Assembly: GCA_020536535.1 (NCBI GenBank)
Contig: JAHLWZ010000127.1
Location: forward strand, 1 to 64,000
DNA length: 64,000 nt
Direction: 5' to 3'
DNA from: Pelomyxa schiedti
Taxonomy: Eukaryota; Protista; Evosea
The position numbers and the translations under genes are program-made. Within the stretch, counting starts at the first letter, position 1, and every line of letters begins with the position of its first letter. The notes under the pieces are model-generated. The model was not told where the DNA came from and did no database searches. It was given only the letters and a program-made list of their open reading frames with translations. Positions 25,159 to 32,564 of this stretch are shown in pieces.

Positions 25159-28100
25159 CTACTCCACCCAGACATGGAGGTTATGCTCTTGCAGTGTTGC
25201 CTGTAGGGCTGGCACTGCACCAGGGGGAAGCTTCGATCCTGTGGGCATTACCCAAGTCCTTTTGCTTGCACCATCAAATGATGAGAGGCGGGGGTACTTG
25301 GAGGCACCAAGAGAGTGGAACGGCAGTATTCGGACGTGCTTGACACCTGCTGCAGAAATGGTGGTGGCCAGTAATTCCATCTCATCGAGGGAAGTATTGA
25401 ACCCTGGAATCAATGGTATGGATACCACAAATCTTTCTGGGCCTACTGCAGATACGGCGTGAGGGAGGTTTGAGAGTATTGTCTAATGAAGGGGCAAGGT
25501 GAGTTTGGATTATGTCATGATTGATATCAAACCTTGTTGGATATGCCAGTGAATTGTTTGTGTGTTGCTTCAGTGACGCACTTGACATCAAAGTACACAA
25601 AGTCTAGTAGAGAAAATATCTCCGATACCTTGTTGTGTGGTTGGTTTCATCAAAGTGGTATGGGAGTGCATTTACTTTTCCCCACTCCACACAACCGCTA
25701 GTCTCCATTCCAACAGAAATCCCCCTCGACTTCAAACCCCGCACAACATCCAGTACAAAGCCTTTGTTGTGGAGAAATCAGTGGAAAAAAAGACTTCGTA
25801 TAGAAGTCAAAAACCTGCTTGCATGAGTGGCTCGCCACCACTCAAAGTGACCCCTCCATTCACCCCATAGAATTCATGTCTTTCCTCAGCCAACTGAATA
25901 ATCTGTACTGCGTGAGTCTTTTGACAGAGAGGTGCAATAATACCTCCATGGCTTTGATCGGTTTGCCAACTGTAGTGGCGGCGTCTGTTGGCACCGCCGG
26001 CACCATCTCTTCCACGTCAGGAAGTTGACCTTCCGGGTTGCAACACCACTTACAACGAAGGGGACACCCTTTCAGGAAAACTGTTGTGCGATTACCTGGA
26101 CCGTCTTGAACTGTATAGTCCTCAATGTTGAATATTGTGCCAGTGGAAGAGGGACTGAATATTGAGGCCTGTGCATGACTCTGGAGATGGTCAAAAAAAA
26201 AAAAAAAATTACATGAAAAAAACCTTTGGAGGCGGGAGTAGAAACACGTCACCTTGTGGAAAAGCTGTTACCTTTCTCTCTGGGATTGTTGCTGTAACGT
26301 CACTGAGGTTGTGTTCAGTTCTTTGGATGACTTCATCTTGTATTGATCTGGAACCAGGGTAATTTACCTAAAAAATGACTTGGACTTATACCGAGCAAGT
26401 TCAACAAAAAAGGCAGAAAAGCCAGCAACGCGAACTATCAAGTGGCGATAACTTGGTCGAAGATTAGTGAGTCTTATTTTTAAAAATAAGATACATACTT
26501 CTCTGGATGTAGCTGAGCCTCCCTGCACCTCTGATTAGTCTTTCATGTGAAGAGAGAAAGAAAAACTTTAGAACCTGAGCAGCTTGGAATCTACAACATT
26601 GAACTGAAGCTGGAATCCATTTCGCTGAAAGTATGTCCTTATGAGATCAAGCAACTTACGCGACCCTTGTGGCCCACTCAAGGCTGATGGATGGAATTTC
26701 ATGTTATGAAGTCCACCTCTTGTGTTGGTTGTTGGTTTTGTTTTAAGAACCCAAGCAATGATAAGGAATAAAACCTTATTTGCGTATGGTCTACTTTTGC
26801 AGCAGAGAGCAACACAGCATATGGCCCTAGACTATGTTAGTCCTCTACATTTTAGTGCCAATTATCAACCACAGGCATCCGTTCCAGGCGCTGGGCTGGT
26901 AACCCCATCACATAGGATATCACCAGATTTGCGCCCATCGGGTGTTGCAAGGCAAGCTTTCCCAAATGGTGCATGTGTACTAATGGCTGAGAGACGGTGA
27001 GGTAGAAAGAGTTATGGAACCCATATTACCAAGCATAGACGGGTCATAACGCTCCCCAAGAAAGTTTACCCCTTGAGAGACAATACTGCAATAGGCCGAA
27101 AAGAGCTCAGTAAAAAGACTATCGACACTGTTGTTATTATTACCCCACTTTGGAGCTCTTTTGCACTCTAGAGGTGATAAGGTTTTCATCATTGAGGTAT
27201 GCACATACCCTCGAGTAAGTCTTCATACCCCTTCCAGTTTGCCATCAAAGCATTTCTAAGTGTTTCCATCGAATCAAGCTGCTTATTTATTAGATTCCAG
27301 GTAACCATAGTTATTCTCAACCTTGGAACCAAGCAGGAATTTGATTGCGGCAAGGGAGTTCACAACGTTGACCATACCAGATGACAAAGTAGTTGGAGTT
27401 CCATTCCAAAGTGCACCACCATCATCAAGGGATAACCCTGTGTGAAGATTATCCTTTGTTATGAAGAGATCACAGGGTTGTACCGCGCCCAATACAATCT
27501 CTAGTCAATACAGAACAAAATACTAAATTGCAAGTTTGCCTATGTGCTGCCATTACGTAGTTCCAATACTTTTGCCAGTTCCCAATTGCTGTCAATAATG
27601 AGCACGAAATTGGCACCAGACATTTGGGCAGGCACCATCTGTCATATGTTTAACATAAGCTGCCATAAGTTCCTCCAAAGTCCGCGGTACCGGGGTCTGA
27701 GTAAATTCGATTCCTTTTTTTTTCCGCATCCTTCAGAGAAAAAGAACGCGGGTGGTAATGTACCTGTACGTGGGTCCTTTCCACCATATAGAGCAAGTTC
27801 AAACAATTTCATGTGATTAACGAACCCTGGCTGTACAATGCCGTAACTCATTCCCCCAAGGGTTGGTTCGGTGCATCCCCCTATGTTCAATTAGGGGGAG
27901 AGGAAAAGGTGCCTTGCCGCTTACCCATGGAGGCATATTTTCGGATCACTTGAAGGGGTTGCTTACTTCTTTCCAATTCGTGTTGTATGTATACCTTGCC
28001 AAGAAGTGAGTTGTCAATAATAGAAATACGGTTCTACAGGCAGGTTGAAGAATGCAGGAAAGCCTACGCCAGTTTTCACACACTCAACAGCTTTCATTAA

Positions 28101-29919
28101 GAACCTATGTTGTAGTTGAGGTGTATACCTATGAAAAAGTTAGGAGAAGATAGAGATTAGCAGAGTCCGCACCACAAGGACAGCGTTGGCTGAGTTGTTC
28201 TACAGTTTATTGCCGATTGAATCACCAGCATGGAGAGTTCACTGTCCGCTGGGCTAAAGCAGCAGAAAATTAATGATAGTGGAGTACAATAAAAAGTATT
28301 GGGAACCTTCCATCCTCGTCGACACCACCAAGCATCATATTCTGGAATAAATTTCCACTTCCTAGACCCTCCCAAGAAAATGAGGCAACATATTCTACCA
28401 TTGTCATCTTCATTCGCAGTGCCTCAAGTAATTCCAGTGCACATTCTTCGGTCAATGAGCCGCTCTCCCACTCGGGCATGAAGTAGGGATACATATCTGT
28501 GGGACACCACAATTAGCTATTGTCACTATCTTTGGGTAGTAAAATACAATAATCAAAACGCCCAGGACTATATCCGAGGTGTGCACCCTCCAAGTGACCA
28601 GCCAAGTACACGAACCAGAATGACTGGACTGAGAGGATATTACAAGAAAGGGAAAAAAAAAACGGAAAGAAAGTACCAGCTTCGTGGAAATTACGAGGCG
28701 GATTTGCCGGAACCCAAGAACACCTTTCAGCAATGGCTGTTAGCATTTCTGCCAATCTGGGATCCTCGGTTACGGAGGCCAATCGTTGTGCTTCGCGTTG
28801 GTAATTGGATACCCATGAGAGAACTCCTCTTAGAACTCGTATTCCTGCCCGCCAGAAATAGACCTAATAAATTAAGAAATGTTGTTTAAACTGGTGATAG
28901 TACCTGCTCCATACTTCTGCAGCCAGTTGGTATGAAATTCTGTGACGCACTTAAGGCAGAGAAGGAATAACGGTAAAAAGTACTGCGATTTTGTCTTCCA
29001 TCTCAGCAATAATTGCATTGAAGCCTTTTCTTAAAGCCGTCTCGTAGTCAAGAACAAATCTACCCTCTGGTGCGGGGTCATGAGCTGCGGTGTAGAGTAC
29101 AGCTTTCCATCCATTAGTTATATACGCCGCTTTCTGGTGAAAGATGGAAAAAAGATAAAAGAGTAAGCAGTCGATATGGGAAAATAAGGGGACACACAGG
29201 GAAACACGTCATCCAAATTTTGTCCCCCAAGCTTTGCATGCATTTGTCTGAAAAGTATTGGGCAGTCTCCTTCAAGGCATCCACATCTTTCACAGGGAGC
29301 AAGAATTTCTTTCCAAACATGACGTACTGCGAGGAGGAGGAGAGGTCTTTGCTGATTTGTATGCCACCACCGCTTCCCACCTCTGTAACTTCATCTTGAC
29401 TTTCTGCCACAACTTGTAGGGAACCCAGCTCCCTACCGTCGTAAATTACAACTCAATGCGCACGAAATAGAACCTTAAAATATAGCTCGAAGCGTAGTTG
29501 CAATAAGGTACAGCACCACGTGGGTAGCGTGTTTTCTGCCCCACAATCGGCTCCCCTGTAGAGGGTTTTAGAGGGAAAAAAAAAATTCTGAGCCCATTTA
29601 CCCAAATTGATCACTGGAGTGAGATGTTCCATGGCGTAGGCGTGGCATTCCGCTCTGCTTGGGGGTGGTCAGAGAACGAATGAATTAGCATAGCTCCGCA
29701 GAAATTTCTTTACCATTCAATCGGAGACAAGGTCCCACACACAGCCTTGTGTGCGGCCATGTAGTTTGTGATGTACTCCACGTCAACAACCAACGGAGAA
29801 CTGACGTACCTGCCAAACATCTCCCTTATCGCCGCCGTAGATCCAGTAGCGATCTCCTGTGTGCTCACACATCTCGCCTTCCTCCCAGTTCCACGTGTAA
29901 CGTCACTCGTGTCTGCCAT
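25159..29919 (-). CDS. Glycyl-radical enzyme (HPAD/arylacetate decarboxylase clade) fused in frame to its radical-SAM activating enzyme
   Basis: GRE part: [64 protein letters not shown] (Cys 27873-27875), [30 protein letters not shown] (Gly 26421-26423), [11 protein letters not shown]. After a phase-0 intron (26181-26271) it continues into activase [48 protein letters not shown] and IPLIPGFN...[12 protein letters not shown]. Confidence 0.9.
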
Positions 29920-30182: not shown

Positions 30183-32564
30183 CTATCCTCTGGAAATGTG
30201 CCTGCCTGGGAAGTCCAATGGGGACAATAAGCCTATCACAGTGTGTAACAGTGTGGCTGGTAGTGATCCAAGAGTGGAGGTCACCAGTCTATCTTTTTCT
30301 ACCAGTGCAGAAACAGGTGTTTGCTCAGTCCTGGCCAATCGATTCCAGCACAGAATTACGGTTTTGAGAACGACCAGGAACCACTTGGGGAAAAACTGCC
30401 TATCAGCAGGGCTCCATGTGGCTGGACTTGTGAGGTGATGCAGGCATTTTGGCAAAATAAGAAAATCCTGGGGCAGTGTGGCGCCATGACACCAAAGCAA
30501 CTTGACCACTTTGGAATTGCCTGCAGACAGAGCCTCTATTAGTGTGTCCTTGTCAAATTGTGCCCCAAATTCAAGAAGAAGGGATATGGCCTGGAAGGAG
30601 TCAGTGGTTCTGACAAAGTACTTCAGCAATGGTAAGGAAACTGGGAGGTTTGGGTCAGCACCCATTTCCAGCAGCATTCGGGCACAAGGTAAACTATGTT
30701 GACTTCTACAGCACAGGCCAAGTGGGGTGAAATAGTCTCTTGTATCAAATGACTGAGAGCCTTCATTTAACTGACAGTCAAGGGTCAACCCATGATTGGC
30801 AAGGAGTTCCCCCACAAGAGGCTTGTTTCCAGCTTTAAGAGCATATTGGAACAGCCTGGTTTTATTGTTCACATCCACGGAAATGAAAAAGTCAACCAAA
30901 GAGTTATTGCTCAAATCAGAGAGTTCAATCAACCGATGGTGGATTTCTGAGTGGTTCTGGAGCATTGGAAGCAAGATGGACGTGAGCTCACCCCTCTTAC
31001 TTGAGATCAGTGCAGTGGATATCATAACCGAGATAAGCTCATACAAAGATATATCACTGTCACAAGCTTGTGTTATTGTGTACTCTTGGCCGCCCCTGTT
31101 TTGGTTGACCTTCTTCCATGTGATCGTTTTGGGTGCCTCCTTCCAAGTTTCGTGGTATTTGGCGGAAATAAACTCATAGAAGCTCGCCATTGCAGATGAG
31201 TCAGCCAAAGTGAATGAGGATAACTTGAGGAGGGATCCAAGCAAATATAAAATATGAATACTGTGTGGTGCACCAAAAAGAAATCTTAGGGCTTGGTGGA
31301 AGAGTTCGTCCAAGGGGGAATGGTTCAAAATCTTGTTGAAGGGAAATGGAAAAAAAGCGCGGGATAGAATCTGAAATGTGGGGCTTTCAAAGTTGGAGAA
31401 AAACCCAAGAGCCTTCAAAAGCAGATTTTCAGGGATACTGGTATTTGTAAGGCTCAGAGGTATAAGTACCAATGCGGCGCAACCAGGATGCTGGGTATCT
31501 CTGAGGCCAAATTCTACCAACTTATCTTTTGTAGAACCATCCACAATACAGAAATCTGTGAGAACACTCAAAAAGATTTTAAATAGCTCGTGGTCCATCT
31601 TAGAGAACTCGGGAAGTCTTGGTAGTAATGATTCCACCAGTCTTGCAGTGAGACTGAGGGCAACTGTGCCCTTGCCCTCTAGGGTAGACCAGAACTTAAC
31701 GGTTTGTAGGATGTATAAATTTGAAGTCCCAATGAGATTCACGACCCAGTCCGTAGCTGTTGCGGTTAGTAGCGGCAGTTCCGCACTTGTTTGCATAATG
31801 GTGGTACACAGCCCTACGCATGGGACATAGTATTCTGAACACATAGGAAGTAGCCTCTGTACAATCTCGGTGAGAGCCGTTTCGTACGGGACTAGGAATT
31901 TCCGGAAGTTTGAAAACCACAGCATGGCCCAGAAGGAGGTAAGTTGTGGTCCCCTGAAAATTGCTCCAGATGCAGAAAGGATATGAATATCAGTCACCCA
32001 GGTGTCACAAATCACCTTCCTCCACGAATCGGGAAAGTTCCTTGTGAATATATCAGGCATAAAATCATCAGCCATAAGTAGAATCGTAGGAGTCAAGTCA
32101 ATAGAGAGAGCACCCAGCAGCTCAGTATCAAAATACCCACGCTCTGACAACTGAAGCACAAATTCCAACACGAACCTGGTAGCTGAAGTACCTGAATAAG
32201 ACAGGACAGCATCACGTGCCAGCAAAGCCAATTTCCTGGAATCATCCCCCTTTCTGCTATTAGTGCCTCCAGTCTTATTTACAATTATCCACTTTTCCAC
32301 ATCCACAACAATTCTCTCTCCATTGCTGATTCCACAATCATCATCAGGAGCAGAACAACAACAAATACTACTGGGACTCAGTTTTTCAAGTGCATGAAGA
32401 TAATTGGTCATAGTTTCGGTATAAATTGACCTCAGAAGGGCCGGGAGTGCCCGCATTGTGGGATGAGCGCGCCCCACAGCATCCAGAGCCTCGAATGCAG
32501 TTGGACATTTGATTTGGTCAAGGGCTCGTAAAAGTGTTCTTCTATGAGCAGGCTCCATCTCCAA
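30183..32564 (-). CDS. Intronless 793-aa protein with helical N-terminal region, ankyrin repeats and a C-terminal F-box/SOCS-like motif
   Basis: Single uninterrupted ORF. Ankyrin-like LFQYALKAGNKPLVGELLANHG, FTPLGLCC...CARMLLEMGADPN and TLIEALSAGNSKVVKLLWCHGA. C-terminus TWSPADRQFFPKWF...LGSLPATLLHTVIGLL. Confidence 0.8.
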   Translation of the reverse strand: MEMEPAHRRTLLRALDQIKCPTAFEALDAVGRAHPTMRALPALLRSIYTETMTNYLHALEKLSPSSICCCSAPDDDCGISNGERIVVDVEKWIIVNKTGGTNSRKGDDSRKLALLARDAVLSYSGTSATRFVLEFVLQLSERGYFDTELLGALSIDLTPTILLMADDFMPDIFTRNFPDSWRKVICDTWVTDIHILSASGAIFRGPQLTSFWAMLWFSNFRKFLVPYETALTEIVQRLLPMCSEYYVPCVGLCTTIMQTSAELPLLTATATDWVVNLIGTSNLYILQTVKFWSTLEGKGTVALSLTARLVESLLPRLPEFSKMDHELFKIFLSVLTDFCIVDGSTKDKLVEFGLRDTQHPGCAALVLIPLSLTNTSIPENLLLKALGFFSNFESPTFQILSRAFFPFPFNKILNHSPLDELFHQALRFLFGAPHSIHILYLLGSLLKLSSFTLADSSAMASFYEFISAKYHETWKEAPKTITWKKVNQNRGGQEYTITQACDSDISLYELISVMISTALISSKRGELTSILLPMLQNHSEIHHRLIELSDLSNNSLVDFFISVDVNNKTRLFQYALKAGNKPLVGELLANHGLTLDCQLNEGSQSFDTRDYFTPLGLCCRSQHSLPCARMLLEMGADPNLPVSLPLLKYFVRTTDSFQAISLLLEFGAQFDKDTLIEALSAGNSKVVKLLWCHGATLPQDFLILPKCLHHLTSPATWSPADRQFFPKWFLVVLKTVILCWNRLARTEQTPVSALVEKDRLVTSTLGSLPATLLHTVIGLLSPLDFPGRHISRG

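Follow-up and report, generated by a model that had tools for sequence, protein, structure and literature searches.

A glycyl radical enzyme of the arylacetate decarboxylase branch, predicted to be fused to its activating enzyme, in the amoeba Pelomyxa schiedti

We analyzed a 64,000-nucleotide stretch of DNA from the amoeba Pelomyxa schiedti (GenBank assembly GCA_020536535.1, contig JAHLWZ010000127.1, positions 1 to 64,000 of the forward strand; hereafter the window) and focused on one gene at 25159-29919. Our favored interpretation, which we consider reasonably probable, is that this locus is a functional nuclear gene of bacterial origin encoding a single polypeptide in which a glycyl radical enzyme (GRE) is followed by a linker and a radical S-adenosylmethionine (SAM) activating enzyme (activase). 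Together they would constitute an arylacetate decarboxylase, most likely one that forms p-cresol. All features described below lie on the minus strand.

A preliminary description of the window had placed a decarboxylase at 26980-29700. No long open reading frame (ORF) spans this interval. Instead, it contains short minus-strand ORFs with Pfam matches to the PFL-like (PF02901) and Gly_radical (PF01228) domains, the pattern of a eukaryotic gene split by numerous short introns. When individual exons were compared with the PDB, they gave weak matches or none. A 64-residue exon, used as a phmmer query against 1.8 billion representative sequences, retrieved an 832-residue bacterial relative with 70% identity, and this relative, used as a query in turn, retrieved a GenBank protein named "formate acetyltransferase [Pelomyxa schiedti]" (P0095, 1124 amino acids). 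The spliced exons of the window translate residue for residue to P0095. The annotated model consists of 30 exons, and its introns are all of the GT..AG type and 40-66 nt long, with a median of 45 nt. Because P0095 maps exactly and all introns are GT..AG, the window is P. schiedti nuclear DNA. The exons contain no frameshifts or stop codons, and all catalytic residues are intact. The GC content of the window is approximately 44%, compared with 60.7% for Mastigamoeba balamuthi (PMC8136499), which was rejected as the source. The sequencing runs that contain the stretch are consistent with P. schiedti, and a single-cell RNA run from the same study contains 37% of the words sampled from the stretch. 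The interval 26980-29700 proved to lie inside the gene and to encode a PFL-like GRE, as described, but it covers only residues ~70-697 of the product encoded by 29919-25159, leaving the glycyl radical domain and the activase outside.

The GRE part comprises residues 1 to ~843 (26305-29919, exons 1-24), ends in ...RTEHNL, and has the features that define the PFL-like GRE superfamily. In addition to PF02901 and PF01228, it contains the glycyl radical motif RVAGF (26418-26432), identified by Pfam and by an invariant alignment column, with Gly819 as the radical site. The cysteine loop, GGCTEP (27864-27880; the intron before it interrupts its first codon), supplies the thiyl-radical Cys491 and Glu493, both invariant, and the fold matches many GREs with TM-scores of at least 0.85. 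The GenBank name, which denotes pyruvate formate-lyase (PFL), was rejected: the protein scored 94 bits against TIGR01255, whose cut-off is 994, and shared 17-18% identity and TM-scores of 0.66-0.71 with PFL. What it has in common with PFL is the superfamily fold and the glycyl radical motif.

We compared the GRE with the curated NCBIfam models. The best match was indoleacetate decarboxylase (IAD; NF033718), with 691.5 bits against a cut-off of 1100, followed by 4-hydroxyphenylacetate decarboxylase (HPAD; NF033715), with 515.7 bits against a cut-off of 1150. For reference, a true IAD (P0016) scored 1187.7 bits and a true HPAD (P0022) scored 1725 bits against their respective models. Both models aligned nearly end to end with the Pelomyxa GRE. 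In a maximum-likelihood tree, which was a quick search with long reference branches, the family formed a clade with support of 100 that was sister to the grouping (IAD,(HPAD,P0030)), supported at 98, and the two were joined at 99. The GRE-activase fusions of Paratrimastix, Hexamita, Mastigella, Rhizomastix, and Kipferlia fell in the same clade as the Pelomyxa gene with support of 98. An AlphaFold model of the GRE part had a pLDDT of 90.3. When this model was compared with solved structures using Foldseek, the best match was HPAD (TMq 0.91, 30% identity); among Swiss-Prot models, OsIAD (TM 0.94, 34%) ranked ahead of HpdB/CsdB (TM 0.93, 30%), with other GREs clearly lower.

The family is thus a third, separate lineage in the HPAD/IAD branch, closer to IAD and a member of neither, and its nearest characterized relative is indoleacetate decarboxylase. 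The preliminary description had recognized the arylacetate-decarboxylase branch of GREs correctly; however, its placement within the HPAD clade did not hold. Given the scores below cut-off, the position in the tree, and the structural ranking, the label "HPAD clade" is too narrow. The gene is best seen as the Pelomyxa orthologue of known protist "HPAD-AE" fusions and adds a member to an already annotated kind.

The same description had proposed that the residues binding the phenol of 4-hydroxyphenylacetate are replaced and that the pocket is more hydrophobic. We examined these positions in a formal alignment, using P0022 as the reference for CsdB numbering (the offset is CsdB+7, ungapped against residues 315-673 of PDB 2Y8N). 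All three replacements held, at close to the positions given, and the pocket is indeed more hydrophobic. CsdB Ser344 corresponds to Leu335 (28578-28576), a position that is Val in IAD, within the segment HLGYS (28567-28581), in which the Ser of SPGR is kept. CsdB His536 corresponds to Gly507 (27827-27825) within VQPGF (27822-27836), where Gln505 stands in place of IAD His514 and Phe508 is kept. CsdB Glu637 corresponds to Leu606 (27387-27385), the equivalent of IAD Leu616, within TTLSSG (27376-27393; PMC6181972). A fourth change converts CsdB Leu400 to Gly390 (28362-28360).

Other parts of the active site are retained, as had also been stated, and the quoted motifs are present. Arg218 of PEGR (29059-29061), invariant in the alignment, corresponds to CsdB Arg223 and to IAD Arg226, which has a ring-stacking role (PMC13232127). 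A further segment (28345-28374) contains Trp386, equivalent to the IAD gate residue Trp392, together with Gly390 and Phe395, the counterpart of CsdB Phe405 and IAD Phe401 (IAD roles from PMC13232127). In all, Arg218, Phe395, Cys491, Glu493, Phe508, and Gly819 are identical to their CsdB counterparts Arg223, Phe405, Cys503, Glu505, Phe537, and the radical Gly. Features shared with IAD are the Arg, the Trp, the Asn-Leu-Phe (NLF) motif, the Cys-x-Glu loop, the Phe, Leu606, and, as read through the relative P0016, Leu696 and Ile698. From this alignment, the pocket looks closer to that of IAD than to that of HPAD.

We then asked how these positions vary within the family. Our alignment contained 140 members, of which 129 were bacterial proteins of ~830 residues (from Ignavibacteria, WOR-3, Cloacimonetes, Bacteroidetes, Aminicenantes, Thermotogota, and Firmicutes, and from Anoxybacter fermentans) and 11 were long proteins (at least 950 residues), mostly eukaryotic GRE-activase fusions. 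Leu606, Gln505, Gly507, Phe508, Trp386, Leu696, and Ile698 were each present in all 140 members, as was the Val of VQPGF; Gly390 was present in 139 and Leu335 in 136. Every eukaryotic GRE-activase fusion retrieved had the same substitutions, including the Paratrimastix and Hexamita proteins, which were annotated as HPAD in the wake of the p-cresol work on Mastigamoeba. Since nearly all pocket positions are identical across the 140 members, the substitutions read as a family signature and not as a change particular to the Pelomyxa gene. The idea of an HPAD pocket remodeled in this enzyme therefore has to be given up: the enzyme is typical of a large clade with a near-identical pocket.

A second feature of the gene is the predicted fusion to the activase. 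The GRE frame does not stop at the usual C terminus (...RTEHNL) and continues for 41 further codons before it reaches an intron of 43 nt (26181-26223, as placed by the residue-for-residue match to P0095) that links the exon encoding the GRE end and linker to the activase exon. If this intron were not spliced, the GRE frame would terminate a few codons on. In the next exon are the N-terminal signature of the activase and the radical-SAM CX3CX2C motif, and we found no ATG upstream of the signature in the activase frame. The end of the linker and the activase domain (GTIFNIEDY... to ...HVWVE) occupy 25162-26180, in six annotated exons with Pfam matches to Fer4_12 and Radical_SAM. The domain also matches NCBIfam TIGR02494 and the HPAD/IAD activase models and aligns with orthologous and bacterial activases. 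GRE and activase are thus, as predicted from the exons, one reading frame with the GRE first and a splice at the junction.

Similar fusions occur in other protists. The closest relative is from Mastigella eilhardi, with 74% identity to a partial isoform (P0150); the full-length isoform (P0172), from an assembled transcript, is a 1109-residue fusion with a linker similar in length to that of Pelomyxa. Contiguous fusions are also present in Rhizomastix libera (P0173), Paratrimastix pyriformis (P0092), Hexamita inflata (P0096), and Kipferlia bialata (P0011). A search of the protein collection with the junction-spanning part of P0095 (residues 800-960) returned no Pelomyxa transcript fragments. 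Two fusion transcripts, P0093 and P0097, have 57-63% GC and may be Mastigamoeba-like. We also observed a fusion of 1159 residues (P0118) encoded by a 3.9-kb molecule capped on either end by C4A4/G4T4 telomere repeats (L004:1-3924, a Logan contig). This molecule is a gene-sized ciliate nanochromosome of the spirotrich type; the fusion is thus found in ciliates too, in a separate clade of the tree.

The activase domain contains the CX3CX2C motif that binds the radical-SAM [4Fe-4S] cluster (C-PLR-C-KW-C, 26043-26066), which was read from the DNA and is conserved in every aligned activase. In the GenBank model, this motif is removed as part of a 66-nt "intron" (26030-26095). Comparison of the P0095 model with the DNA revealed that this segment is in frame and free of stop codons; it is the longest "intron" of the gene, and no other looks like coding sequence. 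It is kept almost letter for letter in all orthologues and in bacterial activases, and a tblastn alignment with the Paratrimastix protein (P0092) passes through it uninterrupted at 75% identity. The intron is almost certainly a prediction artefact, to judge from these alignments. As the segment is coding-like, in frame, and retained in orthologues, the true product is probably ~1146 residues long, from ~29 exons separated by introns of 40-64 nt, and the deposited P0095 is probably 22 residues too short, resembling a dead activase. Against TIGR02494, the annotated activase scored 146.8 bits, below the cut-off of 174.35, because the scored model deletes the CX3CX2C segment. When the segment was restored, the activase domain aligned fully with its orthologues.

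Two other differences among the activases were apparent. A ferredoxin-like insert of ~45 residues, which carries two auxiliary [4Fe-4S] clusters, is absent from the Pelomyxa domain (25162-26180) and from other Archamoebae and diplomonad fusions (P0172, P0173, P0096, and P0097). The insert is kept in the Paratrimastix (P0092) and ciliate (P0118) fusions and in bacterial partners (L005:11533-12474 and L006:11481-12398). In the alignments, its loss from the Archamoebae and diplomonad activases appears as a natural deletion of the auxiliary-cluster domain. Separately, the C-terminal part of the Pelomyxa activase has a seven-residue insertion, SSFDGAS (25270-25290), which has no counterpart in orthologues or bacterial activases and is too short to be an intron.

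In the bacterial relatives at the three loci examined (L005-L007), the GRE gene is followed directly by an activase gene encoding ~305-313 residues. We found no gene for the small subunit HpdC at these loci, and no conserved neighbors or clue to a pathway beyond the GRE-activase pair. HpdC is also missing from the window, as the preliminary description had noted: tblastn with a real HpdC (L008:6723-6986) gave only chance matches, the best with an E value of 0.42. Since the bacterial GRE and activase genes are adjacent and without a small subunit, transfer of the operon followed by fusion in anaerobic protists fits these observations. At one of the loci, in A. fermentans (CP016379, L005:7261-14942), the pair is flanked by a gene for a PLP-dependent (PALP) enzyme and by genes of the 2-hydroxyacyl-CoA dehydratase type (BcrAD_BadFG activator, HGD-D). 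This arrangement hints at aromatic amino-acid fermentation and is not conserved at the other two loci.

By analogy with its relatives, the Pelomyxa enzyme is likely to be an arylacetate decarboxylase, and its leading product would most probably be p-cresol from 4-hydroxyphenylacetate. Mastigamoeba HPAD is reportedly fused to its own activase, according to a 2017 study by Nyvltova and colleagues. Bactericidal p-cresol is produced by M. balamuthi through enzymes that it gained by lateral transfer (PMC8136499), and on the basis of M. balamuthi, a Trepomonas homologue once called formate acetyltransferase was relabeled as HPAD (PMC7762791). The preliminary description had reasoned from the replaced residues to a possible new substrate, and had allowed that this idea would fail if the p-cresol enzyme of M. 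balamuthi had the same replacements and the Pelomyxa enzyme made p-cresol. Judging from the other fusions, this is probably so.

Several points weigh against this interpretation. The p-cresol assignment depends on what a single amoeba, M. balamuthi, produces; the searches for family homologues returned no match labeled Mastigamoeba. The pair that binds and deprotonates the phenol in HPAD, Glu637 and His536, is missing, and with an IAD-like pocket, a different arylacetate, indoleacetate among them, has to be taken seriously as the substrate. We know of no in vitro assay for any member of the clade. For the activase, the domain annotated in GenBank lacks the cluster motif, the splice at the 43-nt junction and retention of CX3CX2C are predictions, and the competence of a domain that lacks the bacterial ferredoxin-like insert is assumed.

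The alternative that survives best is that this enzyme, and with it the whole clade, uses another arylacetate, such as indole-3-acetate to form skatole or phenylacetate to form toluene, and that the protist "HPAD" labels are wrong. Because the pocket is IAD-like, this is a real alternative, and we regard it as possible, if on the unlikely side. The enzyme matches IAD at the Arg, the Trp gate, Asn-Leu-Phe, Phe508, Leu606, Leu696, and Ile698; HPAD's Ser344, His536, and Glu637 are missing; IAD ranks first among curated models and among structural matches; and the IAD residue that is Gln505 here, His514, is dispensable in IAD itself (PMC13232127). However, the protein falls far under the IAD cut-off (691 versus 1100 bits) and outside the IAD clade, nine positions neighboring the pocket are unlike IAD, and the loop extension common to IAD and HPAD is missing. 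A PhdB-type toluene enzyme is disfavored by the Cys loop, which is Cys-x-Glu here and not Cys-x-Gln. Moreover, the only organismal phenotype tied to such fusions is p-cresol, and AAD handles 4-hydroxyphenylacetate without the HPAD residues (PMC13450708); 4-hydroxyphenylacetate is therefore not excluded by their absence. In its strongest form, this alternative would make the clade a fifth, biochemically uncharacterized class of arylacetate decarboxylase, with an IAD-like pocket in which Gln replaces His and a substrate other than 4-hydroxyphenylacetate, a proposal we can put forward only tentatively. If it were true, free-living anaerobic protists would emit a volatile such as skatole or toluene, and protist proteins would be mislabeled as "HPAD".

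A more distant possibility is a GRE that is not a decarboxylase, for example, a dehydratase or lyase acting on some other substrate. The Cys-x-Glu loop is typical of GRE eliminases as well, sequence scores against PDB entries for glycerol dehydratase and CutC roughly equal those for HPAD, and the three bacterial loci have no conserved neighboring genes that point to a pathway. We nonetheless consider it unlikely, as the family is a well-supported sister to both arylacetate decarboxylases, its N-terminal 200 residues align only with HPAD and IAD, it keeps the Arg that stacks on the ring in IAD and the IAD cage of aromatic and aliphatic residues, and the dehydratases are clearly more distant in structure.

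It could also be that GRE and activase are separate proteins in Pelomyxa, or that the activase part is dead, so that the fusion would be an artefact of the gene model. The junction depends on a predicted 43-nt intron inside a low-complexity tract, and the same model contains at least one false intron. This reading is very doubtful given the 41 open codons beyond the normal C terminus, an activase frame without an ATG upstream of its motif, a linker as long as that of Mastigella, whose fusion stems from an assembled transcript, and contiguous fusion ORFs in at least five other protists. A pseudogene, or a contaminating sequence from one of the amoeba's bacterial endosymbionts, would accord with the bacterial and archaeal symbionts of Pelomyxa (PMC10579272) and a chiefly bacterial gene family but is effectively refuted by the intron structure, with 28-29 spliceosomal GT-AG introns in a genome that has 7.4 introns per gene (PMC8887013), and is at odds with the intact catalytic residues, exons free of frameshifts and stops, and neighbors of eukaryotic type, such as an ankyrin-repeat ORF.

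If the gene encodes a fused arylacetate decarboxylase, as we favor, its mechanism can be outlined by analogy with HPAD and IAD. A chain of ~843 GRE residues, a linker of ~40 residues, and the radical-SAM activase would contain all the components. The activase would use the [4Fe-4S] cluster held by CX3CX2C to cleave S-adenosylmethionine, and the resulting radical would take a hydrogen from Gly819. The radical would then move from Gly819 to Cys491, and the thiyl radical would oxidize the carboxylate of an arylacetate bound in a pocket formed by Arg218, Phe395, Phe508, Leu606, Leu696, and Ile698, where Gln505 is predicted to be the sole polar contact in otherwise hydrophobic surroundings. After departure of CO2, the benzylic radical would regain a hydrogen from Cys491, which could be reprotonated via Glu493. 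The clade would need no HpdC, as a two-gene operon in bacteria or as a fused gene in anaerobic protists.

Directly upstream of the GRE gene, at 30183-32564, is an uninterrupted ORF of 793 residues with ankyrin repeats. It is notable as intronless, while the adjoining GRE gene has ~28 introns.

These results bear on several questions. They correct the public record on two counts: the name formate acetyltransferase does not apply to P0095, and the GenBank model drops the iron-sulfur motif of the activase. Pelomyxa joins a set of anaerobic protists (Archamoebae, metamonads, and a ciliate) in which a bacterial GRE operon is fused into a single gene, and the protist fusions are a clear case of lateral transfer in which an operon became a fusion. 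The insert-less protist activases are a natural experiment bearing on the purpose of the auxiliary clusters. For enzymology, the interest lies chiefly in the clade as a whole, a large, uniform family with the hydrophobic cage of IAD, an invariant Gln, and no small subunit. Knowledge of its substrate would reveal whether p-cresol, skatole, or toluene is the bacteriostatic or odorous volatile that these widespread sediment bacteria and protists emit.

Among characterized systems, IAD offers the closest comparison. In its substrate-bound structure, Phe401, Phe517, Leu616, Leu730, and Ile731 form a cage around the indole, with Arg226 stacked against the ring and Trp392 acting as the gate of the channel. 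His514 forms a hydrogen bond to the N-H and is dispensable, and Glu502 serves Cys500 in a Kolbe-type mechanism (PMC13232127). The Pelomyxa enzyme resembles IAD in its Cys-x-Glu loop, ring-stacking Arg, Trp gate, equivalents of Phe401, Phe517, and Leu616, and a Leu/Ile pair near residue 730; the equivalence of Leu696 and Ile698 to Leu730 and Ile731 was read via the relative P0016 and not from OuIAD. Neither system has a small subunit, in both the activase gene adjoins the GRE, and IAD is the best match both by curated hidden Markov model and, as OsIAD (A0A100YXA1), by structure. The two differ in that His514 is replaced by Gln505, which is invariant in the family, and Val343 by Leu335. Further differences, in P0016 numbering (0-2 off OuIAD), are Ser398 to Gly390, Ala517 to Gly507, Ile616 to Thr605, Cys618 to Ser607, and Ala727 to Met695. 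The Pelomyxa enzyme also lacks loop extension 2 (IAD residues 651-675), scores below the IAD cut-off, lies outside the IAD clade, and is fused to its activase.

HPAD (HpdBC/CsdBC; PDB 2Y8N and 2YAJ) is the nearest solved structure and aligns from the N terminus to the Gly-radical domain. However, Ser344 and Glu637, the latter of which deprotonates the phenol in HPAD (PMC13450708), are both Leu in Pelomyxa, Leu400 and His536 are both Gly, the latter in a shortened loop, and the stretches inserted in HPAD behind the Cys loop and around residue 660 are missing. HPAD also differs in having the [4Fe-4S] small subunit HpdC, for which we found no gene in the window. PhdB and AAD resemble the Pelomyxa enzyme as arylacetate-decarboxylating GREs without an HpdC-type subunit. 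AAD (PDB 7E7L) scored lower, at 305 bits, and aligned only from residue 222 onward; its decarboxylation of 4-hydroxyphenylacetate relies on an active site that is reportedly unlike that of HPAD and requires no small subunit (PMC13450708). In PhdB, the loop is Cys482-x-Gln484, the Gln is essential, and the Q484E mutant is inactive (PMC7079210). A PhdB-like assignment was rejected, as the Pelomyxa loop is Cys491-Thr-Glu493. The eukaryotic "HPAD-AE" fusions have the same GRE-linker-activase architecture and identical pocket residues, and the M. balamuthi enzyme presumably belongs among them. Compared to the metamonad and ciliate fusions, which are contiguous ORFs, the Pelomyxa gene has far more introns, and it lacks the ferredoxin-like activase insert that the Paratrimastix and ciliate proteins keep.

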